The translations under genes were made by a program, and so were the position numbers. Of a stretch of 64,000 bases of DNA, positions 592-60,662 are shown piece by piece (the first letter of the stretch is position 1; each line of letters begins with the position of its first letter). The notes under the pieces were generated by a model that saw only the letters and a list, made by a program, of their open reading frames with translations, was not told the DNA's origin and made no database searches. The stretch comes from Penicillus capitatus (lineage: Eukaryota; Plantae; Chlorophyta): NCBI GenBank assembly GCA_965649825.1, contig OZ287698.1, positions 325,949-389,948 on the forward strand, in the 5' to 3' direction.

Positions 592-668
592 GCCCAATGC
601 GTCCACACGCGCGTCGACTGCATCTCCGGCAGATTGGTCGTGATGTGACGTCCATATGCTCCGAAAAG

Positions 669-2376
669 ATGGCGGCGTCCCGATCGTTGCTGCTTCTACA
701 CTTCAACGACGTCTACAACATCGAATCCGCGACGTCTGAACCTGTCGGCGGCGCTGCGCGTCTGGCGACTCTGGTGAACGTCCCAACGATAAGTGCATTG
801 ATATCGGCATGCCTATGATAGATTCGGCGTTATCACGAAGAGAATCCACTCGTTCTGTTCAGTGGAGATTGTCTGAGTCCATCTCTCATGTCGACGATGA
901 CACGAGGGAAACAGATGGTTCCGATTTTGAACGCCATGGGTATCCAGGCTGCATGTCTGGGCAATCACGATCTCGATTTTGGGATCGACTACTTCGCCTC
1001 CCTATTGAAGGAATGGAATTTCGTTTGGCTTGTCGCCAATGCGTTCGACAAACACACAGGTCACGAAATGCATCGCCCTTGACGCCACCAGCTCACCGAT
1101 TACGTCAGGTTTGTTGCTGGGAGGCCTCCAGGGGACGCGTGTCATGGAGTGGGATGGTGTAAAGATCGGCGTGATGGGACTGGTCGAGGAGGAGTGGCTG
1201 AAGACGCTGGCGACACTCGAACCAGATGATATCATCTACATCGACTTTGTGGAATGCGCACAGAAATGCTGCACAGAGTTGAAGGCGCAGGGGGTGGCAC
1301 TGATCGTGGCACTGACCCACATGCGTCAGCTGAACGACGCCCTGCTGCTTAATGCTGTTCCGGAGATCGATCTGATCTTGGGCGGTCACGATCATTTCTA
1401 TCACGCCGAGCGTCATCCGGATCACGGGAATCTACTGATCAAATCGGGGACCGATTTCCGCGATCTTACCAAAATTCGGATCGAGCTGAACGCGGACGGG
1501 ACAAAGAACTATGAATGGGAGCATCTCTTCGTGACGAGCGCCATCGAAGAAGATCCGATCGTCAAAGAGATCATCGCCGAGTTCGTCGACGTTTCGAGCC
1601 ATTCGTTAAGTGACGTGATTGGACATTCTGTTTCGGAGCTCGATGGGCGTTTCGATGCCATTCGCAGTCGAGAGACCAATCTGGGCAACTTCATCTGCGA
1701 TGTCATCCGCGAGGCTGCTCGCAGCGACATCTGTTTCATCAATTCCGGCACGTTTCGATCGAATCGCCTCCACGCGCCGGGGCCCATCACCAAACGCGAT
1801 CTGCTCGACATTCTGCCGATGATCGACGAAACGGTGGTGCTGCGTCTCAAAGGATCCACCATTCTCGAAGCACTGGAAAACAGCGTGGCCCTCTATCCGA
1901 AGCACGAAGGACGATTCCTCCAAGTCTCCGGTCTGCGTTTCGTCTTCGACCCTTCGCAGCCGTCCCATCATCGAATCCTCAACACATCTGTTTATCTCAC
2001 CGATTCCGGATCGCCGTTAGATCCCGAACAGGACTACCGTGTCTGCACCAAAGCCTATCTCTTCTTAGGGAAAGATGGATATGACATGCTAAGAGATCAA
2101 CACGTTTTACAAGACAGCGAAACAGCACCGGTGTTGCCTCTGTACATTCGCTGGCATTTTATGAAGCTCGATGTCTTGACATCCTGGAAGCAAGAGGTGG
2201 CTGGTGTGAAAGAAGGCATCAAACGTTTTGCCCATCGCTGGCGTCGCATCTTGGCCGATCCATCCGATCAAGAAAACCCAAACCGTTCCTGGACAGCTCT
2301 TTTCGATCAAGACCGCCTCAGCTATGTCATCGCACCCTGTCTCGAAAACCGTATTGTCTCGTTGCACAACGCTTGA
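669..2376 (+). CDS. 5'-nucleotidase / bifunctional metallophosphoesterase family protein (two short 5' introns)
   Basis: Motifs LLHFNDVYNI, GNHDLDFG, ALTH and GGHDH, then a C-terminal 5'-nucleotidase domain (RSRETNLGNF, INSGTFR, GRFLQVSG). Confidence 0.9.
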
Positions 2377-2377
2377 G

Positions 2378-3139
2378 TCATTTCTTAAGCTTGTCGCTCT
2401 TTGGACGGAGTTTGTTGAGAACAGGCGCCTCTTGGTAATGCTCATCATTCAGCAGCTCCCAGAACACACCCTTCGGCCGTTGGCGCATCGGTTGAGTGGC
2501 GTACGATTTCCATGGCGTCAAAATGAAGTCGACCGGGACATCGAACGCCTCCATTTGATGTGACGTGAGATCCATGACCTGCAGAGGATGCACCACTGTC
2601 ACGATCGTCGTCGACTCGCGAATGGCGCCGATCTCTGTCAGAATGGCACATTCCAGATCGCTTCCCATTCCGTGTTTGCCTTTTCCCACGCCAAGACGTT
2701 CGCCGCTCTGCGGATCGACCGCCAGCGATGGCACCACCACCAGATCCAAAGGCACTGGGTTTCTCAGCGGCACAACCGTCGCCATGGCATCCGCAGCATC
2801 TCGTAAGCGCGCCACATCACGTGTTCTGTAATGAAAAGGGATCTCGCGTTCAGAGATCGTCGCATACACGGCATTGGGTTGATCGAAGCAGGTCCATGCG
2901 AGGCTCTTGCCCAGATCGAGTACGAGATTGCGCAGCGATGTCTCGCGCACTGTGCGTTCGACTTTGACGACCTTCGCCTCGGCGAATTCCGACAGCGATG
3001 TCAGTCGATGCAGCGCAAAAGGTAACTCTTTAAAGAAGGGCAGTCGCCCGTAGAACGGCGGCCGCATGAATGTATGAACGGTTGTCTCTTCCATGGCCGT
3101 CCACACCCGCTGCCGCACTCGTCCTTTCCACGATGCCAT
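2378..3139 (-). CDS. 5-formyltetrahydrofolate cyclo-ligase-like protein (COG0212/MTHFSD-like)
   Basis: DLVVVPSLAVDPQSGERLGVGKG, TTIVTVVHPLQV and DVPVDFILTP. The likely ATG is 3139 (MASWKGRVRQRVW). Confidence 0.8.
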   Translation of the reverse strand: MASWKGRVRQRVWTAMEETTVHTFMRPPFYGRLPFFKELPFALHRLTSLSEFAEAKVVKVERTVRETSLRNLVLDLGKSLAWTCFDQPNAVYATISEREIPFHYRTRDVARLRDAADAMATVVPLRNPVPLDLVVVPSLAVDPQSGERLGVGKGKHGMGSDLECAILTEIGAIRESTTIVTVVHPLQVMDLTSHQMEAFDVPVDFILTPWKSYATQPMRQRPKGVFWELLNDEHYQEAPVLNKLRPKSDKLKK

Positions 3140-4299: not shown

Positions 4300-4726
4300 T
4301 CTTGTCTGTCCGTCTCTTCATCGAACAGACACACACATAAAACGATGTACGCGTTCAATGCAGCGACAGCAACCGCATATGTGGTTTAATGATTCCTCAT
4401 CATTACTGGTCTGCTGATCACGAAATGTCTTGCTGCACAGATGGGTGTTTGGTTAATTGTTCGTTCTCATATTAATAATGTCTTTTCTACCTTCTTTACT
4501 GATGTGTATACACTTCAAACACGCAACAGCAATATGGGATCATCATTTTGCACGTCCGACCTGTGGTTTGACCCTCGACAGTAGATGAGAGACATCCGTC
4601 CGATCTGTCACCCTGAGTCACATAGAGTCTCTGGTGTAAAACGTCAAGTTCTGCATGTCCGTCACATCTGTCACATCAACGAAGCTATCTCGTGTCGCTC
4701 TCACGTTGCATGTGCACGTCGAGGAG

Positions 4727-9431: not shown

Positions 9432-9977
9432 GATTCCCTAGAAACAAAGAAACTTGAAAAAGCGGTTACGACGTGAAAAACCCAATCATCAAAAAACGGG
9501 CGCGAATGGCGAGTCCCGTCGCGGGTGCGTGCAAGTAAAGGCATCCGACGTCGTGCAAGATGCGTTGGCAAGAAAGCAAGGAAAAGCGCAATACCCTTGC
9601 ACGCAAGTGGAAGGTCAGGATTTAAGGTGGTTGCTTGACTCGGTGGAAGACCGAAGGGTAGAAACTCGCTCCAAAGACGGCGTTGCAAAAAGCAAAGTGA
9701 AAAATGGACGCAGCATGGGGTTTTATAGTCCTCCGGGGCCTCGGGATCCTCTCTGATGTCAGAATTCTTCCCGGGAAAGATACGATTTCTGCCGAGATGT
9801 GTCACGCCGTGCAAGTAAATTCGCGATCCGCGCTTTTTTGACACGGAAGAGGTTGCCGTCACATCATGATCAACTCCACGCACGGTGCTGTGACACATTC
9901 GCGCTCTATGCATTGAACCGCAGGGCCTTATCGTACAGGCACCGTGCGACATTGACTCATTTGCTGAGGCGAAGACG

Positions 9978-11050: not shown

Positions 11051-11092
11051 TGATGTGACGTCTTACCATTTTTCATTTACCCTCCGGCGCTC

Positions 11093-13939: not shown

Positions 13940-13950
13940 TGCATTTCACG

Positions 13951-14864
13951 TCACATCAACACCCACCAAAACAAAGCCAAGACCAACAGCGTCACCACAA
14001 TCTACAGTCGACGTCAACACCCACAGACCATAGCATTTCTCACCATGCCGCCATACGTCAGTCGTGCATCGCCGATTTGACGCCCGTGAATGACGCGAAG
14101 CAGCGATTCCGACAGACCGACTGTATTCAGTACATCTAACATGCGCTTCTGCGTTCTCTGCGCCAACGAGCCATTCGATGTGCCGCCGCCTTTGCGTGCA
14201 GGGTTACTTTGAGGAGATCTTTATTCGACGCCATGGACTCGAGAATTGCCGTTCCCGTAGCAAAGGCTTCTTCCAGTGTCGTCTTCGATGCTTGAACAGA
14301 TGAGGCCAACTGCGACTCTTCATCCATCTGCATCGCGACGGCTGCTCCGTCGGAACGACGGGCAAAGAGCTCTTCTCGCTCGGCGTTTTCGCGCTCTAAT
14401 CGTTGAGCCCGACGACGCAGACGAGCGAATGCCGTTTCGATGGCATCCAAATCCCCCGAGACTTGTTCGACTTTCCTATCCATTGACTTCGACACGATCT
14501 TTCTTCTGTTTCGTATGTTACCGTTTCCAGACGTCGCGTTTCGATGGAGCTTCCCTCAAGACGTGCATGCGCCAGATGCTATCCATATCACCACGCACTT
14601 TCTACGAGGAGAGCTCAAGTGAGAGAGGGATGGCATCCAGATAAGCGCATCCATGCCTGCAACTGCGACAGTTCTGTCGAGAGTCGGTCGATTTGACTGG
14701 CGACTGCCGTTCCTGCAACCTGAACTAGACAACAACGAAACGCCGTGCGCTGCCACGCGGTCATGAAAGTGTCCGACCTCAGCGCCTTCGCATTTTTCGA
14801 GCCCCTGATTCAGACGCAGCACCAAACGTCGCGCTTGACTGTGGAGAGAAGGAAGGTCGCTCAT
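13951..14864 (-). CDS. Membrin/Bos1/GOSR2 Qb-SNARE
   Basis: MSDLPSLHSQARRL..., the SNARE motif AILESMASNKDLLKRTQKRMLDVLNTVGLSESLLRVI, and a C-terminal TM anchor GGMIVVTLLVLALFWWVLM* (TGA at 13951-13953). Confidence 0.85.
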
Positions 14865-16354: not shown

Positions 16355-17830
16355 AGAATTACTTGAATCGCTCTGATGATGTACTTGACTTCAACAACGC
16401 TGGCTGCGTCGAGCATGCTTTGGATGACGCCCTTCTTGCGTTGCTGTGAATCTCTGCCGGAATCTCTTGCGATGGCGAGGAACCCTTCGCACACTCCACG
16501 GATGTAGAGAGAATCGGATCTAACAACGAGATCTTTCTGTCCATCTTGTTCTTTTTTTGAGACATAGCCGCTGATATTAGATCTTGCCTGTTGACGGGAA
16601 TCGTCTCAACGTGCGCCGCGGTCGCGCACACGCGTAACGAGAAACGGGGGAACAGACCTGAGCAAGTGCAAATGCTACAGGTAGAGCGCATACAGCAAGC
16701 TAAATACCCCTCGGCACCCGCAGACCGCTGTCACATCAGAAACCAGCAGTGTGTCCAGTTAGTTCACGGGGCCGGAACCGTTGTCGCACACCCGTCACCT
16801 GTCGTGTACTGTTTACGGTCTGAGGCAGTGTTACGATCTCCTCCGCCCATGTTTGCAATTGCTCGGACGATTGTCTGGTCTGCGATGTGCAATCTGTGTC
16901 TTACATGTTCTGGTCCCAATCTGTTTATGCAGAGCTAAACAGCGGGGAGGAAATCACCGGGTGTATATTCCAATATGCGTCGAAAACACTCGGTAAGATG
17001 TTGTGTAATATCGAGCCTTGTTAATATTGGCTCGATCTTCTCGAATGTCCTTGCCAGAAAGACGTACGGCACAGGATCGCCTTTTATCCAGAATAAGCGA
17101 TCCTTATTATCGAAGGACGTATATGCAGTTGCACGATCCGAGTGCTTGTTTGTATCTCGCGTCCTGACGGGGATTTGTCGGACTATCGTGCGCCGCGGTC
17201 GCGCACACGCGTCAAGAGAACGGAGGAAGCAGGCCTGGGTCAATGAAAAGACAACAGGCCGGTGCACGCCCCGTCATCCAATACCCTTGGTTGCCCGCGG
17301 ACGGACGTCATGTCGCGAAGCTGCGACGTGTCCGGTCCGCGGGCCGGAACCGTTCGTGTGCACCCGTCACGGCCCGATCTACAGCAAAGTCACATCAACA
17401 GCTAGGTACAAGGTTGTATTACTTTTAGCGTTCGGCGTCGTGGAGCCTTCGAAATGCGTTTCGTACTGCCATCTGATCTTATACTAGCACTTCCTGCACA
17501 TCATTCAACCACGATCGCACGATGCAGCAGATCGCACCATCGGTTTCCTCGGGCTCGGACGGCGGTGCAGACATATTCGAGAGATCGTCGCTCTCTTCGG
17601 TCATTGCCATCTTCATATCGCTGTTTGATTCGGTGTCACCCATCCGTGGAAGTTTGGGCGTTTCCATTGACGATACGCCCATCTTGAAATCGAATTCATC
17701 GGCTTTGTTAAGACGTCTCGGTGCCGTCTGTTGATGACGACACTCGCATTCTGTCTTGTCCTTGGGAGAGAAACCTTTTTGGCTTCGTGATGATCTTCTT
17801 GTCGCCCTTTGTACGCTTCGTCCGTTCGTC
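16355..17830 (-). pseudogene. Degenerate DNA ligase I N-terminal (DNA-binding domain) fragment
   Basis: W.KGDPVPYVFLARTFEKIE...RL...LTECFRRI...PGDFLPAV*LCINRL has an in-frame TAG at 16935-16937 where LIG1 has Tyr. A later exon reads LYIRGVCEGFLAIARDSGRDSQQRKKGVIQSML...KYIIRAIQ. No adenylation domain follows before the next gene. Boundaries are approximate. Confidence 0.72.
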
Positions 17831-17858
17831 GTCGGTAGCAGTTAGTTCGTGCAGCTGT

Positions 17859-19632: not shown

Positions 19633-21908
19633 TCAATGCAGCTCATCTTCTAATTGATCGTAGCGGAACACGAAGTTGTCTTTCTTGCGGTAACACCAGC
19701 CGTTCATGAAGTTCTCTGGTTCCCCAGGAAGAGCCCCACCTGACAGAGCTTTGTCGAAGTAGATGTATCCACCTTCTTCAAAGTCTTTTGTGGTGGCCTT
19801 GGGCTCGCCAGATCGCTGGAACCAGGATTTATGCTCAACATGATATCGCCAGGATTGTCGTTTGAGTTCTTTAGCAGCACAATACTGTGCGATGTCGCCT
19901 GGGTGGAAGTAAAAAGCATAGAACAGTCCCTCTGTGTCCAGCTTCTGATAGAAGCCGGCATCTTCGAGCTGGGGTAACCGATGAATAGGGAAGCTGGCAG
20001 GAAGCTGCTGCGCGACACTGCGGCTGGTGTTCTGAGACAGCTGAGTCTTGTAATCACTGTCAACGGGTTGGGGCATCGATCGCCGACTGCATGCCTGCAG
20101 CAATTGTAAACTGGCAGCGGGGTTGCCTTCGAATGGACTAGGTAGGAGTGGAATACCAGATACGTCCGTACAGGACATGCTGATTTTATCGATCAGATCT
20201 GCAACATCCAGACTGGACAGAAAAGGATCCGCCACTTCCAAAGGTTCGTCTTTGGAGGAGGACGATGGACCACCAACACCACCGCTCAACACAGCCGCTT
20301 TGAAACCCAACGGCTTCTCTCGTAGACTATCTTGTGACAGCGACAGCTTCGTCACATTTCCTTGCATACCGTCCATCGATGACGACGATCCTTTTCCTCC
20401 GGTAGATCCCGAGAGTGACGCTGTCTCCAGCAAACTGCGTTTTGCATTTGGCTTCACCTCTGTAGCCAGTTCCAGCGATTTGGATTTTTCGGCCACGCCG
20501 CTGGCTGCCAGTTTTGGATAGTCCCCATCTTCCCCTGGGCAACATGACCTCCCACGATTCTTGCACACCCACTATTCCTTACCTTTTGGTGTATCCCACA
20601 CCGTCGGCGTTCGATTTCCCTGCGTTGCAGTGGTTGTGGTGGTGGTCGTAGGCGTCGTCGTAGTGGTGGTATTCCTACCAGCCGCCGCCAATGCAAATGA
20701 CATCGCACCGTTTGCCGGTTCAGTTTTGGCAGCAGCCCCACCGATCACGGCATTCTTTGCAGAAGGCGACGTCCCTTCGAGCTCCTCCGCCACTACATGA
20801 TTCGCTGACGGTGTCTCAGACATCGAGACACGGCGTTTCATACTGGACTGCGATGAAGCCGCCGATATCGGAGCCGGTCGAGCTGGCGCCTTCTTTTCCT
20901 CCTCCACGACAGTGGCAGCATTGCTTCCGTGTGCCAACAGCTGCGCCTTCACCGCTGCCGCCGCCGCACGTTCCTTCTCTCTTTCCCTTTCTGCCTGTTC
21001 CTCCTCTAAGTCATTCACCTTCTTTGCTTTCGATGTGATGGTTGCCGACTGGAGGCCAAGGGTCACATCATTCAAACGATCCAGCAACGGTGCATACGTT
21101 TCATCCACGCAATCAAAGCCCGAATCTTCGTCTTCGTTATCGGTTACGTAATACTCAACCATGTCTTTCAGCTCATCGATCTCTTCATGCGTAATCGTCC
21201 CATTGTCCAAACATCGCATGCATTGCTCCAATCGCGTGATGTGACTCTTATGCCGTACCACGAGCTCTTCCAGCTTCTGTTGCCTCTGAGATGGCTTCTT
21301 CCCACGTCTCGACCCATTGATGTTCTCCAATTCTGCCTCGAATTCATCAATCTACAGCACCCGATCACCGAACGAACGCACAAAGAGGCATCGTTGAAAC
21401 CTGCATTTGAAGAGCCTCAACTTGTTCATTCAGCCATTCCCGTGCCACCTGCCGGGCTTTTTCCTCGGGGTCCAGTTTTGCAGCCTGGCCCAATCCTGCT
21501 TTCGAGAATGCCTTTGTTTTTGCTTCCTTTTCACAGTGCTTAAATCGTTCCATCTCCTTCTCAATGTTTTTCCTCGCCTCCATGAGCACCGTCTTGTCCT
21601 TGATGTCACTCCCAGCAATCCTATGACATAGCACCTCACTCTTTTATCTAGAAACATCCGATATCTAACCATGTTTTGATCTGATCTCTTAACCGCTGCA
21701 ATTTTTTGATTTCTTTTTTCAAGTCAGCTTCGTATTTTTCCCGCTGACTCTGGCTCTCAGTTACGTAGACCTACCAAATGGCGATCCCCACAGGCGCCTC
21801 TTTCTCGAATTTTGCCTTTTCCCATATTTGGTCGAACTCGACGATGCCTTCCTGCACTTTCTTGAGCGTTCGGTCGATTTCCGCCTGGAGTTTTCGTGCC
21901 GCTCCCAT
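19633..21908 (-). CDS. NOT3: CCR4-NOT complex subunit 3
   Basis: N-terminus [40 protein letters not shown], and the C-terminal NOT box [11 protein letters not shown]...[13 protein letters not shown]. Confidence 0.92.
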
Positions 21909-26728: not shown

Positions 26729-26838
26729 CGTCGTTTGTGTGTAACGAGGCGGGAATAGAAAAATTCAAAAGATACGGAGCCAAACCGTTAAGGCCTGACC
26801 TCGTATGACACGATGCGTCTATGTGGTGATGTGACGTG

Positions 26839-42230: not shown

Positions 42231-42267
42231 CCGAACAATGTGATGTGACAGCCCTGCGTTTGTCGAT
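42231..42267. promoter_or_regulatory. 37-bp divergent spacer between NRPC2 and VPS52, carrying TGATGTGAC
   Basis: ATGs at 42230 (-) and 42268 (+) flank CCGAACAATGTGATGTGACAGCCCTGCGTTTGTCGAT. The promoter role is inferred. Confidence 0.55.
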
Positions 42268-45015
42268 ATGGCTACACCGACTGCCGTCATGGCATACAGT
42301 GAGCAGCTTCGCAAGGCACTGAAAGCACAGTTTCTGGCCGATAGCGACGATTCTGAACACGAAGAGGAGGGCGAGGCGCCGCCACTCGGTGTCGTGTCGA
42401 CAGAAGGGACAGCTTCACTGGGACTACGTGATTTGGAAGCCGAGCTCGAGACCTTTCGAGAACATGACGTCATAAAGGGCATCCTCGACAAAGGATGCGA
42501 TTTACAGAGCTATGCCAAAGAAGTTGAGGAGAAGCTGCGCCGGGTCGAGCTCGATTCCATTCAGGATTACATTCAAGAGAGCGACAATCTCTCCTCCCTG
42601 CATCACCAGGTGATCCACCATCACCTGTCACATCATTTTACCCGTCTGTCCAATCAGATTCATGACTGCGATCGTATCCTGGTGACGATGGAACAGATGC
42701 TTGGCAAATTTCAGTCGGATCTTGGCCAAGTGAGCGAAGAGATTCGTCAACTGCAGAGTCAATCGCAGACCATGAGCGTCAAACTGCGCAACAGACGTGC
42801 AGCAGAAGAAGCGCTGGGCAATTTCATCGATCACATCGCCGTTCCGGACGACATGATCAACAGCGTCCTGGAATCGGAGGTAGACCATAACCCCGACCGT
42901 CGCAACGCCATCGATGGCGTGCTGCGATCAGGTGAATGAAGATTACTTGGAGTATCTGCTGTCGCTCAATCAGAAAGTCAAATTCATTCGTGGCGATGAG
43001 CTGGCATTGTCCTCCGCTGCCTATCAGGACCTGGAGCCTGTGATCGAGAAGCTCCGTCTGAAAGCGGTGTCCAAAGTTCGGGAGTTTCTGCTGCAGAAGG
43101 TCTATCAGTTGCGTCGTCCCAGGACGAACATCCAGATCATCCAGCAGAATGTCCTGCTGCGATTCAAGTACTTTGTCACCTTTCTGAAAGAGCACGGAGG
43201 CGATGTCTATACCGAAGTCCGCGGCGAATACTCAAAGACGCTCTCCCGTGTGCTGTCGCAGCATTTCAGGTCCTATCTCTTCGACATCGACAAGATGCAT
43301 CAGAGCATTGCCACGAAGAGCGATGTACTGGGATCGCAGAAGGAGGAGTTTGGCACGACGCTGTCTTCCTTCTTCGGCGCCTCGCCCAGCGGCACACCCA
43401 AAGCGAACAGAGGGGTAAACACGACACGAGGGTCCATCCCTACACGCACGGTCTGTTTGTCTTAGTCCAAGACATCGGTCTTCGAATTGGGCGATCGTCT
43501 CCACGTGCTTCAGAACCTCGAGAAAGCGGCGATCGTGCCTCACGTGGCAGAGTACGAGGGAAAGAAGTTTCCGTACGAGGTCGGTCACTCTTTTTGGCAA
43601 TGAGATGGCAGCCATCCACGTATACCCTTAGGTCATCTTCCGCAATGTCCACAAACTACTGATGGACACAGCAACGACGGAATACCTCTTCTGCTGCGAT
43701 TTCTTTGCCGAGAGCGAAGTCTTCCGCGAACTCTTCCAGCCGATCATCGCCGTCGTCGAAGGCGAATTTACATCCACGATGCATGTAGGATACACCGAAC
43801 CAGCCCTCTCTATACTTATTCTCTGTATGACATGTACAGGACGTCTATGATGTGATCTCACTGCTGTTGATGATTCGCATCAACCACGAGCACCATCGCA
43901 TCATGACGCGACGTCGCGTGCCGTGCTTGGATGATTATCTGGACAGAATCAATCTCGTACTGTGGCCAAAGTTCAAGAGCGTCTTCGATGCACAGCTCGA
44001 AAGCATCAAGAAAGGCAACGAGAAAGCGCTGTTTGCCAATTCCCCTGCTGTCCACATCGTCACACGGCGTTTTGCATCGATGGTGGCATCGCTGCTCGTG
44101 CTGACAGCTGGATACGAAGAGGATGAAGAGGGAGCCTTCAATGTCTCTGGCTTTGATCATATGCTCGAGAGACTTCGCACGGCATTCTGCAGTCTGCTCT
44201 CTCGCATTTCACGACTGTTCAAAGACAAGAGGTCATCTCTTCCTTCCTGCCCCTGCAAATGTCGCCATACGGCATGTCTAGATCGAGCATCGTTTTCCTG
44301 GTTGCCAATTTCAGTCATGTTGTCACGGTGTTGAAAGAATGCAGTGTGGCACACGGCGCCGCCACTTCGCAAGATCCTGGCAGCTGTCACGTCATCTCGG
44401 TGGGCAAGATGGGAACGCTGGCCATCAAAGAATACGAGGTGTTCTCGCTTGTGCACTTAAGAGCGACAGAGCATCGTGCATGCAGGAGCATCTGCTGAGC
44501 TGTACCAACAGCTATGTGGAGGATCAATTGGATCAACACTTCCATCAGCTGATCGATTTTCTGAAGTCTGCTGAAACGGCACAGAAACAACACGCCGTGG
44601 CAGACGGTTCCATCATTCCAGGTCTGTCACATTGACCCCAACGGCACGTGCTTTCTCATACGAAACGACAGGATTCGGACCCGAAGAGGCCACTCCTGTG
44701 TTTCAAGACTTTGCTGCGCGTTGGACGTCATCCATCGAAGCGATGAACAAGGAAGTGACGATGCAGTTCTCCGGACTATCCTGTGGGAAAGATGTCCTAC
44801 AAGTGCGACATCTCGTCTGCCTCTCTCTCCCTGACGCTCTGCCTCTGCAGGCTTCCATGACACAACTCCTCCTCTACTACACCCGACTGCTAGAACTGAT
44901 CAAGAAACAAGGCGCCGAGGGCAATGCCGTTGTGCGCGATGCCGTCAATATCCCTTCCATTATGTACGAGATCAAGAAATACACACTTGTCACACGATCC
45001 CATGGCGGATCTTGA
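42268..45015 (+). CDS. VPS52: GARP complex subunit VPS52
   Basis: VELDSIQDYIQES.NL..LH.QI..CD.IL..MEQML..FQ.DLG..S.EI, FPYEVIFRNVHKLLMD.AT.EYLFC.DFF and IMYEIKKY. The ATG is 42268 or 42289. Confidence 0.92.
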
Positions 45016-45111: not shown

Positions 45112-47467
45112 TCACTGCAGGAACATCTTGTACAGTTTCTTGCCCATCTCAGAGATGGGCTGAATCATAAATCCGCTCAGTTTGGCGATGGCCTGGGAAA
45201 ACTCTTCTTCTTCATTCGGGGGTAGCTGTATGCCGATCATGACGGTCGTCGCCTCCGCTCCGATGTTCCGGTAACAGAACATCGTCACGTTCCATCGCGG
45301 ACTTACCATGTCCAGGAAAGACAGCAATGCCCCCTTTCGCTCGGGGAAGGCGACTTTTAGGACGCGCTCGTTTGGCACGGAGCCCATGTAGGAACGCGGC
45401 CGGCCGCCGATGAATGTCCCCAGTAGGGACTGCATCTCATCCACTTGGCTGATGTCCATCGTCGGAAACCCACGTGCATTCAGCCGCTTGAGCAGGGCAT
45501 CGATCTCGTCTTGGCCACTGGCACCCACACTCCACAGAATATGGGCATCTGAATCGGCAGCATATCTGTGCGCAGGGGAGGGTATGATGTGCGCTATGGA
45601 ATCCGAAGGGACCTACCTGTATTTGAATTCTGTCACGTAGAGATTCGTTCTCTCCAGGGCAGTCTCGACAAACGAACGAAAAGACCCTGCCTTCTCTGCC
45701 AGTGTCGAGGCCAGCATGAACTCCCGTCTGGCACCGACGTCGGCCAACTCCGACACCAGACGCAGACTATTGAAATTGATGTTGGCTCCGCTGCAGACTG
45801 CCACGACCGTTGTTCCCTGTTTCTCACTCTTTTCTAAGCGGTGGTCACACAATGACTGTCTCGACCTTGATGTTGTAATGACTCAGGTAGGCCTTAGCAC
45901 CGGCGAGTGCCAAAGCGCCTGCCGGTTCCAAAATCGAACGCGTCTCATCGTAGACGTCCTTGATCGCAGCAGAGCATGCTGAGTTGTCAACCATGACGAT
46001 GCCATCGACGAATTTCCGACACAGACGGAACGTCTCTTTGCCAACCTACATCTCACTCTTTTGCCTCTCACTCTTATGGACAGATGCACGCTGTGTCACC
46101 TCCTTCACGGCAACGCCATCGGCAAAGGCATCGACTTGGGAGAGACGAATCCGGTGGCCTTGATGAAGTGACAGAGCCATGGCATTGGCACCGATGGGCT
46201 CCACGCCAATGACCTTCACTTTGGGTCGAATCGTTTTGACATACGCAGCAATACCGGCGATCAGTCCGCCGCCGCCGACGGAAACGAAAATGGCATCCAG
46301 TTTCTTGCCGGACGAAATGCCGTCTAAGATCTCTTTCCCGATCGTTCCTTGACCGGCGATGGTGTAGGGATCGTCAAACGGCGGAATCATGATGCGTCCT
46401 TCTTCCTCCGATCGTTTCTGTGGTGCACAAGCGAAGCCTCTCGACGTCACACGAATGCGAAAAGGGAGACACGACCAGGGCAAAATCTTGTGTTTCTTGG
46501 TAGGAATCGCCGATGAGTTTAACGGTGGATCCCAATCGCTTGACGGCCTCGATCTTGATGGAGGGCGTAGACGTCGGCATACAGATCAACGCATCACATC
46601 CCTGCAGATCTCACTCTTTTATTCGTCACCCTTTTGACAAAATCGCACCAGCTTCGCCGCTGCGAGTGCAACGCCCTGGGCGTGATTGCCAGCCGATGAA
46701 CAGATCACGCCCCGTTTTAACTGCTCCTTCGTCAGATGGGCCATGAGATTATAAGCGCCCCTCAGCTTAAAAGAAAACACCTATCCATGCATCGTCCTCA
46801 GCATATGTGCATGGTGGATGCGTGCCTGACGGGCTGCAGATCTTCCCTCTTCATCAAAATCTCGCTCTTGCAATGTTCGCTCAGTTTCGGAGCCACTTCC
46901 AAAGGCGACTCGATCTGTATGGCATCCAAATGTGAAGATCTTTGTGGGTGATGGTTATCACTCCTCGAGACTTACGGCGACGTCATAGACACGAGAGCTG
47001 AGGGTCTTGACCAAGTAGCCATTGGTCTCACTCCTCCATGATCGCGTTCCATCTGCCGGGTCCTGTACAGGGGTGACGTCACATCACTGTCTTTTCACTG
47101 ATTCGCCGTGTACTTTGTAGCTGTCTTCAGGACGAAGGGGTTCGGATGTGTCGACGGTACTGAGCTGCCCAGGAGGCAGTCGATAGGCATTGGGGAGGTA
47201 AGTGCCGTCTGGATCTGGATGGATGACAGATGGGGTGTCCTCCTTGACGACCGTGTCGAGATCGGTCAGACGATGTGAGACGACATCGCGTCGCGTTGCT
47301 CTGCACGGGGTGAGGCGTCGGCCAGAGACTCGCGTCGTGGCATTTCTTGTGCCGACGAGACGCAGATGATGTCGCAGGCGAATGGGAAGACGCGCGAGAC
47401 GACGACGTCGACATCCAAGCCCATATCGAAGGCGTCCACGTGCGAGAGGGTAACTGCGAATCTGCAT
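45112..47467 (-). CDS. OMR1: Biosynthetic threonine dehydratase (plastid-type, two ACT-like regulatory domains)
   Basis: [72 protein letters not shown] and SGANINF. The Arg-rich first exon resembles a transit peptide. Confidence 0.92.
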
Positions 47468-47603
47468 ATTTAGGTTAGAACGTGATGTGACGTTTGTTGC
47501 GCAAAAGCTACCGAGACGATGATACACAGCTGGCATGAGGGAGGAGGTCCAGACCTAAAACGCCTCGCCTATCGTGCGACGTACAGGAAAAGGCCAGACG
47601 ACA

Positions 47604-48346
47604 TCAGAGAGCTCGGCTACGTCGACGCCACAGACGAACAAGGCAAAACGCAACGCACACTAAAATGGGTCCGTTGGCCAAAAGATATGTCATAGAGCCA
47701 ACCGTGCCTGTCGTTAGGTACGTCTGAATTCACGGAACAGCCGAACGCCCGTAAACATGACGGTGCATAATACCACCTTTGAGATGGTGCGATTGCTCTG
47801 GATAGATTACAACGGCGACGAAGTCTGTCCCATCAACAATGCTTCCCATTTCTGAACTCTGTGTCCTGTCAGGTTGCTTACTCTCTCCTGTCTCCTGTCT
47901 CTAACGCTTCGTAAGACTTTGCGAGAATGATGTGACGAGGATGATCGAAAGAGTGTTGTACTGTAGTATCCAGACATTCGCGACGCATCCATGGATTGCC
48001 CGTTCCGTCCATACCGCTGAACGACTACTGATCCAGAACAGCGAAGTGTGGATGTCCCTTAAATATGAGCGCCGTTTCAAAAGAGTGAGATTTGTGGATG
48101 CAGGTCTTTCTACCGACGACGATTTCGGAAAATGTGCGAATCGAATATCCTCCTCTGCTCCAATGGACGGTAACGTGTCTTTACGGTTGTCATGTTTTTG
48201 GACCTCGCTGTATGCGGATCGATAGAGACAGAGACACTCGTTTTTTCCCACGGAGTTCAAAGAGATCGCCAAATGTCTTTTGCTCTGTCACCATCGCACG
48301 TTGCCAGAGCCGCCAGAAAGAGCAAAACCAGCATCACACAAGGCAT
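47604..48346 (-). CDS. Possible small secreted or membrane hypothetical protein
   Basis: A signal-peptide-like MPCVMLVLLFLAALATCDG at 48346 and a TM-like GPILVCVAFCLVRLWRRR at the 3' end. I could not resolve the exon path. Confidence 0.25.
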
Positions 48347-48769
48347 TGCCCCCGAGATCAGTTCACGGCGTCGTCCGATCTGCATACAAGAAGCTCGGAA
48401 GTGCATTCAGGAGCCGCCATGACTTCGACCATGCCACCCCTGTGCCGCACGACACTCTTTTTCATTTGAGTAATCTTCCACACTTTATCGTGCGTCTTTC
48501 CTATTCTCACTCGCCCTTTCTGTGATGCATTGTACGAAAGGTGCTCAAGATTATTGCATACGCAGCACGAGAGTATCCCACACAGCAAACATTATTAAAA
48601 GGTCTCGAAGCGGCGCCAGATCTCACGCCAATCGATCTCACATGTCTAACACTCGATAACCAAGCCAGGCGCACTTGATGGCGCATTTATCGTTGTCTTG
48701 TTCGATTGACGGACAGCAATGTTTGTATGACGCACTGGTATAAATAATGATGTCCCGTCGATATCGTGC

Positions 48770-49224: not shown

Positions 49225-49342
49225 CAATCGTACAATGGGCGGATACCCTGACAAGGGAGAAAGCGCAACGGGCGTTTGTCTTCGAAGAATGCCAGAAACG
49301 TCAGGACGACATATGAGGTGACGTCTCGCTGAAGGAAAGGCA

Positions 49343-51307
49343 ATGGACGTGAACGGGGCGACCGCGCGGCTGCAACGCGTAGCGGATCATCTCGGAGTCC
49401 AGACCATATCGCACTCTAAGCTCTGCACGGCAGAGCAGGCAGTGAGTGGCATATCGGATCACGATCGCCTCACCGTAAGCCGTCCTCTTGTCCATGCACC
49501 ATCCCATTGCGATGACTTGCTCAGATTTCGGGTTTTGTCGGCAGCGGATGTCCAGAGGAGCTTCTCGAGGCTCTGAGCCGGCGCTTTCGCCTGACAGAAC
49601 ATCCCAGACATCTCAAAATCTTCATCACGATTGGTGTTGGGGATGGAAAGGGACGCGGAATAGACGTCATGGCACATGAGGGTCTGTTAGATGAGATCGT
49701 GTACTCATGGATCGGCACGGCGCCTGGTTTCATGCGACTTGTGCATAGCAACGTCATCAAAGCATGGAATCTCCCTTTCGGATGCGGTCGCTCCCCTCTT
49801 TCGCACCCGATCGTGATCGTATTGTCTCGTTCGATGTCTCAGTGAGCCAAATGATCCGGGACTGTGGAGCGGGAAGAGTGGGACCGTTGACAAAGATCGG
49901 AATCGGAACTTTCGTCGATCCCGCCGAGACCGTACATGATCGACGCACGAAATACACAAAGTGTGACTTGCCGTCGTTTAGGGCGGAAAGAAGAACACTC
50001 GGACCACAGAGGAAAGAGTGAGAGCCACAGAGATCAACGGGGAACGGCTTCTCTGGTATGAAGCACCGAAGAAGATACACGTGGCTTTGTTACGGGGCAC
50101 AACTGCTGACACCGATGGCAACATCAGTTTCGAAAAGGAGGCGCTCCTGTTGGATACCCGACTCAAAGTGTGTGAGATCACACTTTTGAGTATGGCACAT
50201 TCTGTCCTCAGGCCATTGCCGTGCATAACAGCGGAGGCATGGTGATCGTTCAGGTCGAGCGGATCGTCGAAAGATACACCATTCCAACGCGACACGTTCA
50301 TCTTCCTGGAACGCTCGTTGATAAAGTGTCTCCTTTTCTGTGTCTTCTGTGTGATGTGACAGATCGTGCAGATCGTGGTGGTGTCGAAGCCGGAATGGCA
50401 TCTACAGACGTTTAGCTTCGGACTCTACGATCCGAGCATCTCGGGTGCCTGCAGAGCCGTGGTAGATCGCAAGGGTCGACCAAAAATGGACGAACGCAAG
50501 GTCATTGCACACAGAGCGTTTTTTGAGATTCAGAAATCGGCACGCGTCGTCAATTTGGGAGTCGGTATGCCGGAAGGTGTTGCGGTGATGGCAGCACAGT
50601 ACACATCGCAGAATCCGGCGGCTGCTGATGTGACACTCACAACAGAGGCAGGCGTTATGGGCGGATTCCCTTGCGGAGGGCTTCGTTTTGGAACGGCCAG
50701 AAATCCTGTGTCGCACTTACCGTCGGACACCATGTTGGATTTCTACAACGGTGGCGGCATCGATATCGCCTTCCTGGGCATGGCTGAGGTGCATCTTGGC
50801 ACGATGGGCGCGCCGTCAAGATCACGAACTGATGTGACAGGTGGATGCTCAAGGCAACGTCAACGTCTCCGATTTCGGTCAAGGCAGGATGCCAGGATGT
50901 GGCGGGTTCATCGATATCAGCCAATCGGCAAAGATGGTGGTTTTCATGGGATGTCACACAAACGGCGGCCTTAAGGTCATACATCTCACTCTTTCTTCTC
51001 ACACATCTTTCCGTTCCGTACATAGGTTTCGCTCGAGCACGCTCGGTTGCAGATTGTCCAAGAAGGTCGACAGGCAAAGTTCCGCCGCCATATTCATGAA
51101 AAGACGTTTTCTGCGGCATCCAGTCGCGGTCGGACGATTCTCTACGTCACCGAACGTGCCGTTCTGCGTCTGATCCCTCAAGGAGGACTGGAGCTAATCG
51201 AGATCGCTCCAGGCATCGATCTCGAGACCGTGCTCTCGACCATGGACTTCACTCCTGCCATTCGAACGCCATTAAAGACCATGGACGCTCGCATTTTTGC
51301 TGCTTAA
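49343..51307 (+). CDS. Acetate/acyl CoA-transferase, YdiF-like fused family I enzyme
   Basis: [63 protein letters not shown] and YVTERAV. Confidence 0.9.
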
Positions 51308-55885: not shown

Positions 55886-57179
55886 ATGTTGCGCCAACTG
55901 ACGCGCCGATGTTTCATGAACGTCGCGGAGACGGTGGACTGCGTCGTGATTGGGGCAGGTTTGGTATCTATGTGGAGAAGAACATGGGCAGGAGTGTATG
56001 TCACACAGGGGTCGTCGGTTTGGCCATTGCTCGCGCGTTGGCACAGGCAGAGAGAGAAGTGTTGGTTTTGGAGCAGAGCGCCACGGCGGGGACGGGAGTG
56101 TCATCACGCAACAGTGAAGGTGTGAGATGATCATCTCCTAAAATGTGTGACATGATGATGTGACGTGTAGTCATCCATGCCGGAATCTATTACAAGAAAG
56201 ATTCCCTTAAGGCCGCTCTCTGCGTGGAGGGAAAACGCATGCTGTATGCGTACTGTCGCGAAAAGAGCATTCCGCACAAGCAATGTGGAAAACTCATTGT
56301 CGCCACGCATCCAAGGTCACACTTTGTACATAGGTCACACTTGTGATGTCGATCTGTAGTCAGCTCCGTACATTAAGTGAACTCGAAGTGCAAGCGAAGG
56401 AGAACGGAGTGGATGACGTGGAGCGACTCGATCGGAGAGACGTGCAGATTCTGGAGCCACATGTGCAATGCCTGGGTGCCTGTCTGTCGCCATCGACTGG
56501 CATCATCGACAGTCATCAACTCATGCATGCTCTTCAGGCCGATGCCGAAGCCGCGGGTGCTGTCTTCTCGTTCAACAGCCAAGTGGTCGGCGGTGATGTG
56601 ACATCTCCTGTCAAAGAACTGCAGGTGAAGAGCACAGATGGGGAAGAAACGCAGATCCATGCCCACAACATCGTCAATGCTGCCGGATTAACAGCGTGGG
56701 ACGTTGCTGGGTCTTTGAATGGATATGCCGCGCAGTATCTACCCAAGCGGCATTTTGCGAGGGGGTGCTATTTCGCCCTAAAAGGCCAAGCGCCGTTTAC
56801 TCGACTGATTTACCCCATTCCTGAACCGGGAGGCCTGGGCATCCATCTCACACTCGATTTGCAAGGGAAGGCGAAATTCGGACCGGATGTTGAGTGGATT
56901 GATACTATTGATTTTACAATTGATCCAACAAGGGCTCAGAAATTCTATGCAGCCATACGAAGCTATTATCCTGTATTGCCAGATGACAGTCTCGTGCCCG
57001 ATTACGCCGGAATCCGACCAAAGAACGTAGGACCTGGTGAAGCCGCCGCAGATTTTCTCATACAAACGCATCAGTCCCATGTGATCTTGGGACTGATTCA
57101 TTTATTTGGTATCGAATCTCCGGGGCTCACCGCCTCGCTTGCCATCGGAGAATATATTGCTGAGATACTGGATGGTTGA
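55886..57179 (+). CDS. L2HGDH: L-2-hydroxyglutarate dehydrogenase
   Basis: [64 protein letters not shown] and [10 protein letters not shown]. Confidence 0.92.
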
Positions 57180-57186: not shown

Positions 57187-57907
57187 TTATCGGCTATGGG
57201 TCGTGATCTCCTGCAGCCACGTGCCTTGCAAAGGACTGGCATTTCTGTAACGAAACGTGCCTAGTACATAAGACGGATCGTCAGACAGACGGTTAGGGTG
57301 GCGGCGGCGGGTCTCACTCAAAGGAATCTCTTGCATTTCTCGACGAATGCAGATCCATTCGGAAAGCAGCGCCATCATTCCGAGTCCGATCGAATTGGCC
57401 GCCCACCATTCGACGTTGTGCGGAAATCCTCCATAGAGGAGACAGAAGACAGAATGCAAGATGTACACTGTCGCTGAGAAATCCAGGCACTTCTTGGATC
57501 GTTCCACCTAGACAGGCACGCACACTGCTGTCACATCAACCGATCACACACATAGGGCATGCACAATGTGAACGAGGCAGACCGACGTTACGAGTGACGA
57601 GAGGAGATGAATGAGAATCGTTAGAGCGCCCGACATGTTTTTGAGCGTCAGCGTTCGCCAGTCAAAAATGTGGGCCAGCGTGACAGGCCGCACCAACTTG
57701 CCTGGACATATCCATCTCATACACAGCCATACAGCAGGGGGAGTATTACTGAGGGCCAGGTATTCCAGGAAGCCGATAGATAAGTAGAAGAGGCATTGAA
57801 GTGTGATAATCTGTGAGAGAATCAAGACGGGATCCCAGACCTAAGAGAAAACGAAGGCCTTAGTGGGTCTAAGAGTCAACGTCGCGCACCTGAGCGCCAT
57901 AAAACAT
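57187..57907 (-). CDS. SYS1: Golgi membrane protein SYS1
   Basis: MFYGAQ|VWDPVLILSQIITLQCLFY, ERSKKCLDFSATVYILH and EWICIRREMQEIP. Confidence 0.9.
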
Positions 57908-58125
57908 CACGCGGTATCGCGACGCACCAACAGACGATAGACACAGATACGGAGTCTGTCGTTAGATGACTTCGTAGCTCAGCGCGATTATCCGATGGTC
58001 GATGAGATGAAGCGACTCGACGCGGGGACGGTCGTCTGTTGAGCATTGAGAAAAAATGGTGTTCATCGAAATGAACAAACGCCATTGCTGTCACATCAAC
58101 GTCACGTCAGTTGTGTTGTTGTATG

Positions 58126-59364
58126 CTACTCCGTGGCATAGGGGTCGGTGTCGACATCGGAGTCCGACAAGAAGTCGTCGTCGTCAGCCAGTTCCATACG
58201 ATCTGGGGAAAATTCGGTGAGGGGGATGTCGTCTGGAAGATGAACGGGTGAGAGATCCGGTGCGGCGTGAAGTCCTTTCTCTAATGTTTGCAAAACGGGC
58301 GTCTCCAAAGACATGTAGTAAACCACTCTCAGCAACTGTCACATCAAGCACAACATCCCGATCCTGTCACATCAGTCGGATGCAAAAGAGTGACCAGTAG
58401 ACTTGGGATGTCTCCGAGATTGGGCGATGGAAAGGATGTGCAGGAGGTTCGGGAGGTGACGGCGGTGCTTTCGTCCGATGCCGGTGCGAAGGCACTGGGA
58501 ACAGAGATCAAATAAAAACATAAGAGTGAGAAGTGTGACCTTTCTCTCCCACGTTTAACACCAAGCTCTGCACAGCGAGGCATACCTTTCTCCAGTCTCT
58601 TATGACACAGCAGTAGACATCTCACACTCTCTCTGAAACCAAAAGAATAGAAAGCATGGCGCTCTTTCTGCACATAACCCGCTTTGCACGCAACTCCGTC
58701 CGGACAGGAGGTATTACTGTCCATGGCAGTGCAGGAGGGCGACGTATCCAAGCATCCAATGGCTCTTGTCCGCCAAAAATCACCTTCGCCGAGTGCTTCA
58801 TCATCAAACTGCAGAACTGAGCAATTCGCACCTCGTTCTGATTGATCGCCATGCGGCGGCACGTCTTGCAGTCTCGGACGATCCACGGATGCGAAGCATA
58901 GGTCCGATACCTAACGACACAGTCATACACGTATCTATCCTCGCTTCCGTATGCACGATACCGTTTGTTCTGTCCCGGTTCGATGATGCTGTAAGCGATC
59001 TACGTTCACACCTATCTCACTCTTTTATTGATGTGCGAGGTCGCGCACTTCGTGGCCGCTGAAATCTAGCCAGATCGCACGGGCCCGGTCATCGGAGGCG
59101 TTGTGGAAGTTGATGACCGTCACCTGTTCGCTCTTGACCGATCGAAGTCGCACCTGAGAAGGCGGTTAGCGAAAAAGGCGGCGGCGCCGCCGGGACAGGC
59201 GCTACGTCGACGATCTCTTTGACACGGTTGCCAGAATGGGAGGTCACCGTCGCGAAAGCGAGTTCCGTGATGTCGCTTGGGCGATAACGAAAGAGACATC
59301 TTTGTTCGAGCGTTTCTAAATTGTGACCATAGTGTTCTTCCCAATCGTCCAATCCCGCAGCCAT
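58126..59364 (-). CDS. pVHL-like beta-domain protein with a helical C-terminal module and acidic tail
   Basis: The spliced frame gives RSVKSEQVTVINFHNASDDRARAIWLDFSGHEIAYSIIEPGQNKRYRTYASHPWIVRD, which aligns without gaps to pVHL residues W88-W117. Confidence 0.8.
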
Positions 59365-59464
59365 TTCGAAAAAGAAAACCGTCGACAACGCACAGAAACT
59401 CGACCAACGTCACATACAGCGCACGCACAACATGCTCACGTCACATCGTAGATGATGGGATGGC

Positions 59465-60662
59465 TCAGCGATAACGATCGGACTCGTACATTGGCGGCGT
59501 TCTGGAGCCGAGATCTCGACAGTCGCCTTCTTCAGGCAGAACGCGAACGAATTTGGGAGAAGAATGGTAACCGTTGCGGCAGACAAAGCGACGTTTAATC
59601 GGGTGATCCATGAGATTGGCGGCGTCACAGGGGTGGTGATCTTCGGGAAAGGGATGTGACGGCTCGATAAAACAGCGCACTTGACGGACGTGTCGCTGCA
59701 GATCAGTGAGAAGTGGATAGGTCGATTGCCGCAACAGCTGTTGAGCATCTCGTAGTTCGCCGATTTGTGAAGCGAGTCGGATCTGTTGCTTCGAAATCGA
59801 TCGTAGATCGTCGCAGAGATTCGACAGCTGCAAAGGACATACTGGATCACGCCCCTCATCTTTCATCAGATTCGCGCTCCTCTCACTCTCTGGATGACGG
59901 CGGCTTTCTGGGGCTGCTTGATCTGTGCAGTGATGTGACGTCTGGACGATGGTGTTCTGTACATCCGAGAGGGTACGTTGCTGCTCAGAGAGACGCGCTT
60001 CCATGATATTGAGTCGATGCTGCAGGTCGTCAGGAGCATCCAGTACGGTATGTGTGCGTTGTCCGATCTCGGTGATCTTTCTGGCAACGGATTCGCCCCA
60101 CTGCAAGGAAGAAAGGGTAGGTGATGCGACGGTTATGAGTGAGTTTGCGTCGCCAGACTCGGCAACGGAGTCGCCCAGTTGTAAGGGGGAGAGGGCAGGT
60201 GATGTGACTGTTAAGAGTGAGCAGACGTCACCAGTCTTGGCAACGGATGTGACGTCCAATGGCAGAATCGACTCTTCCTTCGCTTCTTGGACAGCGCTTT
60301 CCTTGTTCTCCGTTCCTTTCTCCACCGAACGGATGTCTTCCATTTTTGCTCCTAGTCGATCACTCAACCGTGACACTTTTCAAAAGCTGACGTGTCACAC
60401 TCGTGTGAGATAATGTACTACGAAGGGAGGCAATTTCGCGTATGTACTCGCCGACCCGTTCGTCGATTTGCGACGGCGCGAGTTCTTTCTCCTTCACAGC
60501 AATACCAAGAGTCCTGGCACGCGTCGCAAGCACTTCACAGCTCTCGCAGCACGCCACAAGTTGCGCAACGCAGTCGTTCGCGACTTCTGTATATTGCTGT
60601 AATCGACGGCAAAGATCGTGATGTGTATCATCATCACAAACCGCCCTCTCCGCTTTGCCCAT
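59465..60662 (-). CDS. Hypothetical coiled-coil protein with an internal 26-aa repeat
   Basis: Two long open frames (60360-60722 and 59465-60376) with heptad-like segments. I recognised no family. Confidence 0.5.
60083..60250. repeat. 78-bp coding tandem repeat, about 2.1 copies
   Basis: GGCAACGG recurs at 60083, 60161 and 60239. The repeat encodes GDVCSLLTVTSPALSPLQLGDSVAES / GDANSLITVASPTLSSLQWGESVARK. Confidence 0.85.

Follow-up and report, generated by a model that had tools for sequence, protein, structure and literature searches.

A pervasive conserved octamer in the spacers and short introns of a compact genome, a candidate lineage-specific DNA site

In budding yeast, the general regulatory factors Reb1, Abf1, Rap1 and Cbf1 organise promoter chromatin and act as polymerase roadblocks (PMC5880240, PMC3064788, PMC5052057). 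In plants, the intron-mediated-enhancement motif TTNGATYTG of Gallegos and Rose acts from introns, untranslated regions (UTRs) and coding sequence without splicing; it is degenerate and is confined to the first ~1 kb past the transcription start (bioRxiv 10.1101/269852). We analysed a 64-kb stretch of DNA (hereafter the window; positions 325,949 to 389,948 of contig OZ287698.1 in the Penicillus capitatus assembly GCA_965649825.1) throughout which a single 8-mer, GATGTGAC on one strand or GTCACATC on the other, recurs among closely packed genes. How promoters and the boundaries of transcription units are specified in genomes of such density is poorly understood. A full-text literature search for the word returned only primers and unrelated sequences, and the motif is an unusually clean new case of a known type of feature, the pervasive conserved cis-element of compact genomes, here with a motif-free relative for comparison.

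A sharp, strand-neutral word conserved between close relatives

An exact search of the window found 44 copies of the word, 24 on the plus strand and 20 on the minus strand, spanning positions 642 to 60253. The original prediction, made by eye, had put the number at about 40, and all 28 of the positions it listed are true copies. GATGTGAC is the top-ranked 8-mer by count in the window. Dinucleotide shuffles gave an expectation of 4.16 ± 2.15 copies with a maximum of 10, so that the observed number is about ten times chance, and analytic Markov expectations for orders 0 to 5 were 1.9, 4.3, 4.0, 4.8, 8.3 and 16.8 copies, with Poisson p values for the excess running from 3e-43 to 2e-8. The excess thus persists through the order-3 to order-5 backgrounds that had been proposed as the check on it, and was absorbed only by an order-6 model, because the heptamers that train such a model come largely from the motif itself. 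Immediately outside the core, position −1 is T in 38 of the 44 copies, position +1 a purine in 36 and position +2 G or T in 40. Beyond −1 and +2 the information content of the aligned copies falls to about zero and no wider shared sequence was found. Since flank conservation stops there, the unit is an 11-mer, T-GATGTGAC-R-K, and not a piece of a longer repeat. The extended forms TGATGTGACGT and TGATGTGACAG are present in 12 copies each, which makes the earlier description of the 8-mer as usually extended to one or the other roughly right (24 of 44). Each of the 24 single-base variants of the core is about as frequent as background predicts, the sole mild excess being GATGGGAC (10 copies against 2.9 expected), and T-GATGTGAC-R-K is an unusually sharp word.

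Codon usage alone is too weak for calling genes in the window, so gene models were built from conservation periodicity, open reading frames (ORFs) and splice sites, using a two-strand dynamic-programming gene finder that scores substitution periodicity against a sister genome, open frames and GT-AG introns. The sister genome is contig ctg303781 of the ENA metagenome assembly ERZ26696514, which is 86-90% identical to the window in DNA sequence; its loci L001, L004 and L007 correspond to positions 6349-16086 and 19403-64000 of the window. By these models the window is 74% exon, 14% intron and 12% spacer, with 37 predicted genes of at least 300 nt of coding sequence and 145 predicted introns of median length 50 nt. 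The start codons of the divergent genes for RNA polymerase III subunit 2 (RPC2) and VPS52 are separated by only 40 nt. The introns that carry motif copies are real: most of those checked would break the frame or hold a stop codon if retained, most contain one to three gapped alignment positions, and they are mostly 60-80% identical to the sister genome, compared with 85-95% for the flanking exons.

We found 20 motif copies in introns (2.24 per kb), 11 in spacers (1.41 per kb) and 13 in exons (0.27 per kb). Introns and spacers are therefore 5-8 times denser in the motif than exons; the exons themselves hold about four times as many copies as chance predicts. The three settings described earlier, namely divergent spacers, tandem gene junctions and short introns, are real by the gene models, and the frequent overlap of copies with stop codons is trivial, since the flanking T plus GATGTGAC holds TGA in two frames. 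Relative to the host gene 16 copies are sense and 17 antisense, the lack of strand preference expected of general regulatory factor sites. Within introns the split is 11 sense to 9 antisense, which does not bear out the earlier impression that intronic copies are mostly sense.

Comparison with the sister genome revealed that 32 of the 38 alignable copies are identical and that one more is present but shifted, against a baseline of 39% identity for all 8-mers. For noncoding copies the figures are 24 of 29 against a baseline of 17% (binomial p = 3e-14), and for exonic copies 8 of 9 against 46% (binomial p = 0.01). Every one of the 14 alignable antisense copies is conserved, as are 10 of 14 sense copies and 8 of 10 spacer copies. 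At 42242, 42627 (antisense), 28986, 58338/58366 and 59653-60246 (disordered repeats of a coiled-coil ORF) the motif stays intact amid flanks that have diverged or acquired indels. The copies are under purifying selection, and like the sites of general regulatory factors they are kept between relatives. The aligned sister sequence holds 45 copies, of which 32 are common with the window and 13 are found in the sister only, so sites are also gained. That a motif indifferent to orientation should be a site in DNA, as first argued from its occurrence on both strands, is supported by the balance of sense and antisense copies and by the conservation of the antisense and noncoding ones.

The word is nevertheless confined to one lineage. 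A more distant relative, species 2 (loci L002, L006 and L008; GC ~44-45%), is syntenic with the window at ~70% DNA identity. All six RPC2 introns, like VPS52 intron 1, sit there exactly where they do in the window, and the tiny spacer between RPC2 and VPS52 is present too. Species 2 holds only 3 copies of the motif in 46 kb, which is no enrichment, and the other motif families described below are likewise not enriched there. Because species 2 has the introns and spacers without the motif, the motif-bearing introns are old and the words evolved inside them. It follows that the motif originated in place in the window's lineage, and mobile introns did not carry it in. No counterpart word was seen in species 2, where no 8-mer exceeds 9-13 copies in 46 kb. 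Its top over-represented 8-mers are AGACATGG and AAGACATG (9-10 copies per 46 kb), which may represent start-codon context.

Candidate readings of the word

We give an even chance to the reading that T-GATGTGAC-R-K serves as the site of a putative DNA-binding factor, abundant and specific to the lineage. Such a factor would read the word on double-stranded DNA, and selection would keep it, regardless of the direction of transcription, wherever DNA is free: in the tiny spacers that contain gene starts, in introns of ~50 nt and occasionally in coding DNA. The bound factor might organise promoters or chromatin, or insulate neighbouring transcription units. Inside the tiny introns, the place of the motif would be set by its overlap with splicing signals. 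A sense copy resembles the local GTGAY ... YAG pattern and would be tolerated at the 3' end, where it may sometimes supply the acceptor itself (TGATGTGACAG/, the slash marking the junction), and an antisense copy (GTCACATCA) would fit the 5' half of the intron, where it may sometimes supply the donor GT. These would be overlapping codes: as the DNA site must share a 50-nt intron with the splice signals, each orientation would end up where it is compatible with them.

The placement of intronic copies is consistent with this arrangement. Sense copies end 2, 2, 2, 6, 8, 15, 16 and 22 nt before the AG, and along the intron their median relative position is ~0.75, against ~0.21 for antisense copies (p = 0.07 by a Mann-Whitney test on few copies). 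Two gains found only in the sister genome match the same orientation-position rule, one at an acceptor (44662) and one adjoining a donor (55368). Nine to ten antisense copies lie within bona fide introns and are conserved, and the donor consensus of the window approximates GTGNGA.

In spacers, the motif occurs in 6 of 16 tandem and 5 of 10 divergent cases, so that 11 of the 26 start-containing spacers have a copy, and the 10 convergent spacers have none. At tandem junctions the usual sense copy lies 0-56 nt past the upstream stop codon and 4-33 nt before the next ATG. Noncoding copies fall within 100 nt of a gene start more often than noncoding positions at large (29% vs 16%). It had been proposed that the word serves a general regulatory factor at promoters, and these observations together hint weakly at a promoter or boundary role.

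Several points weigh against the DNA-site reading. The median distance of noncoding copies to a gene start is 345 nt, not significantly less than the 422 nt of random noncoding positions (p = 0.26), and many copies lie deep inside genes; 33 of the 44 are in introns or exons. With no degenerate variant enriched at all, the word is stricter than transcription-factor motifs usually are. Species 2, whose introns are the same and whose spacers are just as tiny, has neither the motif nor an equivalent word, and whatever the factor would do is therefore no ancient necessity. Some gene models are wrong: at 58336-58370 two genes are fused, and the fast-evolving ORF at 59465-60662 was given false long introns. 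All motif counts come from one 64-kb window and its orthologous regions.

Alternatively, the word could act in RNA, as an extended branch-point or acceptor signal of cis-introns and perhaps in 5'-end splicing near the ATG, with antisense copies serving antisense or overlapping transcripts. We consider this unlikely. It would account for the closeness of sense copies to the AG, for the 12 occurrences of TGATGTGACAG and for the AG that, downstream of several spacer copies, lies 0-2 nt ahead of the ATG. It would also fit the vocabulary of the introns themselves: in their last 30 nt the commonest words are TGTGA, TGATG, GATGT, ATGTG and GTGAT, with a sense bias of ~2-6:1 that GTGAC shares, and of the canonical branch-site words, CTGAC was counted only twice and CTAAC only four times in 119 short introns. 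The branch zone is dominated by GTGAT, GTGAC and GTGAG, which points to an unusual branch-site consensus in the window's lineage, and because GTGAY-type words are the commonest sense-biased words of that zone, a sense copy could double as a branch or acceptor signal. However, a splice signal should not be strand-neutral, nor should its antisense copies all be conserved. A sense copy is present in only ~10 of the 145 predicted introns, leaving more than 90% of introns without the motif; three copies end 2 nt from the AG, which would put the branch adenosine 3 nt from it, too near to be plausible. Conserved copies also sit inside coding DNA. By inspection, only three positions of the motif could pair with the universal U2 GUAGUA box (the organism's own U2 is not in the scanned loci), and Rfam and tRNA scans of the window and six related loci found no U2 gene or other small nuclear RNA able to pair with the word. 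Near gene starts, no AG lies between the spacer copies at 11052 and 13950 and the ATG, and across genes AG beside the ATG is at chance level; on these observations we also rejected a spliced-leader or 5'-UTR acceptor. The suggestion that the word might serve as a non-standard branch point consequently finds no support as an account of why the motif exists: with most introns lacking it, three copies so close to the AG, equally conserved antisense, spacer and coding copies and only three possible U2 pairs, it can hardly be primarily a branch point, and branch-point use is at most secondary and overlapping.

Two other word families occur in the same introns. The first, AAAAGAGTGAGA(T), is over-represented window-wide (e.g. 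15684, 21635, 28193, 36663, 40621, 45823, 46052, 46610 and 59016), with 26 copies of AGAGTGAG against 2.5 expected. It is almost wholly intronic, lies mostly 5-36 nt before the acceptor, is conserved in the sister genome in 16 of 26 cases and is missing in species 2. Because it is intronic and sense-biased (21:6 for GAGTGAGA), unlike the strand-neutral GATGTGAC, it looks like an RNA-level intron signal, either of the branch region or a splicing enhancer. The second, AAGTGTGA(C/G) (e.g. 12445, 40848 and 45850), is largely the 5' splice site, where the exon ends in AA and the intron starts with GTGTGA. Inverted pairs AAGTGTGA...TCACACTT are found in several introns (palindromic at 27332/27346, 22845-22870 and 50168-50190).

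The spacer copies raise the further alternative of a strand-specific, initiator-like core-promoter element, in which the purine that follows GAC would be the transcription start, 5' UTRs would be 4-33 nt long, and intronic and exonic copies would mark internal, antisense or neighbour-gene starts. Copies in tandem spacers are sense to the downstream gene in seven cases and antisense in two; six lie 4-33 nt before an ATG, four of them with no intervening ATG; the 3' edge of the word is C-purine in 36 of the 44 copies; and convergent spacers have none. This explanation is improbable, though, for the word as a whole. A copy is found at only ~11 of 37 gene starts, and most copies lie at a distance from all annotated starts. 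Those in introns and coding DNA are not explained, and a cluster of sense copies exactly at acceptors is unexpected for start sites. Moreover, turnover of core promoter elements is rare between relatives so close as species 2. An initiator-like element is possible for the spacer copies. A poly(A) or termination signal was rejected on the empty convergent spacers, the copies in divergent spacers and the presence of a sense copy within 300 nt downstream of only 2 of ~20 convergent gene ends.

Quite improbable, in our estimate, is a signature word with a role outside transcription (as a target of DNA modification, recombination or repair, or self-recognition) or one spread by a biased process such as biased gene conversion. 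The razor-sharp specificity with no degenerate variants, the symmetry between plus and minus strands, the presence and conservation of copies in coding DNA, the appearance in one lineage only and the turnover by gain (13 sister-only sites) would all suit it. The marked bias towards noncoding DNA and start-containing spacers is what one would rather expect of regulatory sites, and nothing in the window points to a machinery: its MT-A70 gene belongs to a widespread family. We know of no such signature-word system in eukaryotes. A related and bolder idea, which we regard as a long shot, is that the word is no ordinary transcription-factor site but the address of a lineage-specific genome-wide DNA system, either the eukaryotic equivalent of the uptake or Chi sequences of bacteria or a site marked for specific modification or for guided recognition. 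Such an address would explain the all-or-none specificity, the strand symmetry, the survival in coding DNA and the sudden appearance after the split from a relative whose genes, introns and spacers are the same.

Hardly credible, and largely refuted, is an origin as a remnant of a mobile element or of mobile introns (introners, or termini of miniature inverted-repeat transposable elements). Where sense copies mark the 3' end of an intron and antisense ones the 5' end, they do resemble terminal inverted repeats, and some introns hold palindromic pairs of related words. But the copies share no sequence past 11 nt, hardly any intron is marked at both ends, and RPC2 introns 1-6 and VPS52 intron 1 lie at the same positions in motif-free species 2, so that the host introns are not lineage-specific and mobile introns or transposon ends are ruled out.

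If the DNA-site reading is right, the motif predicts one dominant DNA-binding factor in the motif-bearing lineage. One sharply defined word under strong selection, with about one copy per gene and lying in the only free DNA, introns included, offers a concrete handle on how dense genomes specify their transcription units. It would also provide a clear example of regulatory DNA and splice signals sharing 50-nt introns, and the motif-bearing and motif-free relatives are a natural experiment on how fast a genome-wide vocabulary of sites can originate.

Individual copies and neighbouring features

The settings of the individual copies are collected in Table 1.

Table 1. The 44 exact copies of the word. 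Strand is that of the window; sense and antisense are relative to the host gene; conserved means identical in the sister genome; a slash next to a sequence marks a splice junction.
Copy	Strand	Setting	Sister genome and species 2
642..649	+	125-nt divergent spacer, ~19-28 nt upstream of 5'-nucleotidase ATG	No sister alignment
2557..2564	+	Coding DNA, antisense to 5-formyl-THF cyclo-ligase ORF (−)	
4661..4668	−	Antisense, extreme 5' end of Suf/HAT-repeat gene (+); first of pair 9 nt apart	
4670..4677	−	Second of pair at 5' end of Suf/HAT-repeat gene	
9858..9865	−	555-nt divergent gap	Conserved, flanks diverged
11052..11059	+	42-nt tandem spacer, sense; 1 nt past TAG of WW-domain gene, 33 nt to next ATG	Conserved
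13950..13957	−	74-nt tandem spacer, sense, 10 nt to next ATG	Conserved
16730..16737	−	Window-specific 3.3-kb insertion	No orthologous sequence
17389..17396	−	Window-specific 3.3-kb insertion	
21062..21069	−	NOT2/3/5 (−) coding exon, sense	Copy and flanks conserved
21238..21245	+	Antisense, same NOT2/3/5 coding exon as 21062 copy	Conserved
24686..24693	−	Fills 24-nt tandem spacer; flanking T and first two motif bases form TGA stop of upstream gene; ATG 18 nt on	Conserved
26828..26835	+	110-nt tandem spacer, antisense to both genes; 3 nt past prohibitin stop, 99 nt to next ATG	Conserved
27073..27080	+	Antisense, intron of prohibitin (Band_7) gene (−)	Conserved
27087..27094	+	Second antisense copy, prohibitin intron 27058-27103 (manually set)	Conserved
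28986..28993	+	Sense, 57-nt intron, 16 nt to AG	Conserved; remaining intron 60% identical
29973..29980	+	Antisense, 47-nt intron of MT-A70-like gene (−), 8 nt from 5' splice site	Conserved
30084..30091	−	Coding exon, sense	Conserved
30147..30154	+	Antisense, 51-nt intron	Conserved
30527..30534	+	184-nt divergent spacer	Not conserved
31506..31513	−	Antisense, start of predicted 52-nt intron; motif GT is modelled donor	Conserved
32382..32389	−	Sense, 5' end of 51-nt intron (G/GTGATGTGAC), then both other motif families	Conserved
37247..37254	+	Sense, DEDDh exonuclease intron, 8 nt to AG	Not conserved (sister: CGATGGGAC)
37752..37759	−	Antisense, 3' end of exonuclease ORF, ~85 nt to next same-strand ATG	Conserved amid indels
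40244..40251	+	RPC2 coding DNA, antisense	Conserved, flanks 100% identical; missing in species 2
42242..42249	+	40-nt divergent spacer between RPC2 and VPS52 start codons	Conserved amid indels; missing in species 2
42627..42634	−	Antisense, VPS52 intron 1	Conserved, flanks diverged; species 2 has intron without motif
47078..47085	−	Sense, 36-nt intron of threonine dehydratase gene	Sister copy has 2-nt deletion
47484..47491	+	Antisense, ~50 nt inside 5' end of threonine dehydratase gene	Conserved
47929..47936	+	1.8-kb stretch without gene model	Unaligned
50353..50360	+	Sense, 37-nt intron, ends 2 nt before acceptor (TGATGTGACAG/)	Conserved
50627..50634	+	Coding exon, sense	Not conserved
50831..50838	+	Sense, 52-nt intron, ends 2 nt before acceptor	Conserved
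56157..56164	+	Sense, FAD oxidoreductase (DAO) intron, 6 nt to AG	Sister motif shifted by a few bases
56595..56602	+	DAO coding exon, sense	Conserved
57530..57537	−	Sense, 42-nt intron	Conserved
58090..58097	−	40-nt tandem spacer, sense, 4 nt to next ATG	Conserved; sister has second adjoining copy
58338..58345	−	Gene junction; flanking T and first two motif bases form likely TGA stop of upstream ORF; ATG ~23 nt on	Conserved
58366..58373	−	28 nt upstream of 58338 copy	Conserved; 20 nt between them diverged
59440..59447	−	100-nt tandem spacer, 17-20 nt past stop	Conserved amid indels
59653..59660	+	Antisense, fast-evolving part of coiled-coil ORF (−)	Conserved, flanking codons changed
59932..59939	+	Antisense, coiled-coil ORF (−)	Conserved
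60201..60208	+	Antisense, coiled-coil ORF (−), within repeated peptide unit	Conserved
60246..60253	+	Antisense, coiled-coil ORF (−)	Conserved

A protein-repeat origin of the four copies in the coiled-coil ORF was rejected, as they are read in two different frames (V-T-S and S-H) and are conserved where neighbouring codons change. The same ORF has a 78-nt in-frame tandem duplication at 60093-60170 that is missing from the sister genome; the older unit holds an exact motif copy and the new unit a copy with one mismatch, GATGCGAC.

The window's genes are ordinary eukaryotic ones with housekeeping functions, including those for RPC2, VPS52, NOT2/3/5, prohibitin, a DEDDh exonuclease, threonine dehydratase and an organellar EF-P, among others. 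Convergent stop codons can lie as little as 1-32 nt apart (2376/2378, 29281/29298, 31766/31787, 38387/38420 and 57179/57187), so that each 3' UTR must run into the gene next to it on the opposite strand. A 1.8-kb stretch at 47537-49342 yielded no convincing gene model; it is partly unaligned, and 48250-48740 is only 72% identical to the sister genome. The best named matches for one window gene were from the green algae Caulerpa (70%) and Bryopsis (65%), and the nearest named RPC2 proteins are only ~55% identical to that of the window; a JGI metagenome scan with the RPC2 protein found no relatives. The assembly ERZ26696514 holds two contigs of ~1.1 Mb, ctg303781 and ctg303794, that are 99.3% identical to each other and both 86-90% identical to the window; several haplotypes of one eukaryote, or several strains or sibling species, could account for them. 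Neither the sister genome nor its twin contig nor species 2 has a 3.3-kb segment of the window (16087-19402). Within this segment are two identical direct repeats of 132 nt, spaced 681 nt apart, four tandem units of 28-35 nt and other internal repeats, and it is possibly an inserted mobile or strain-specific element.

Comparison with known systems

Four described systems invite comparison with the word. With the branch-point and acceptor consensus yUnAy ... YAG it has in common a GTGAC core that fits UnAy and sense copies in or after the branch zone; unlike that consensus, it is conserved independently of strand, is rare among introns and also occurs in spacers and coding DNA. The ACAG-extended motif, TGAT-G-TGACAG, resembles the composite site of TALE homeodomain proteins, TGATTGACAG (PBX-MEIS/PREP type), a likeness that we treat as a lead only. 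The motif has one extra base between the half-sites, and GACGT endings are as many as GACAG endings (12 of 44 in ACAG). TALE dimers are developmental regulators and are not known to act at about one site per gene.

The plant motif TTNGATYTG is likewise a short, intron-enriched word, and a few best matches give the window's organism affinities with the green lineage. The two sequences nearly match, TGATGTG being one position off NGATYTG, where G replaces Y. Intronic copies in the window are 290-1490 nt from their own ATG with no 5' bias, and so do not follow the promoter-proximal limit of the plant motif.

By analogy, the sites of yeast general regulatory factors are probably the closest functional counterpart. 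The word here differs from them in that two thirds of its copies are in introns and exons and not in promoter gaps, with no significant proximity to starts, and in that it has no degenerate variants and is missing from a fairly close relative. Like them, it is short and specific, frequent, found in either orientation, conserved between relatives and over-represented in the start-containing spacers of a gene-dense genome, and a role resembling that of Reb1 or Abf1 is plausible.

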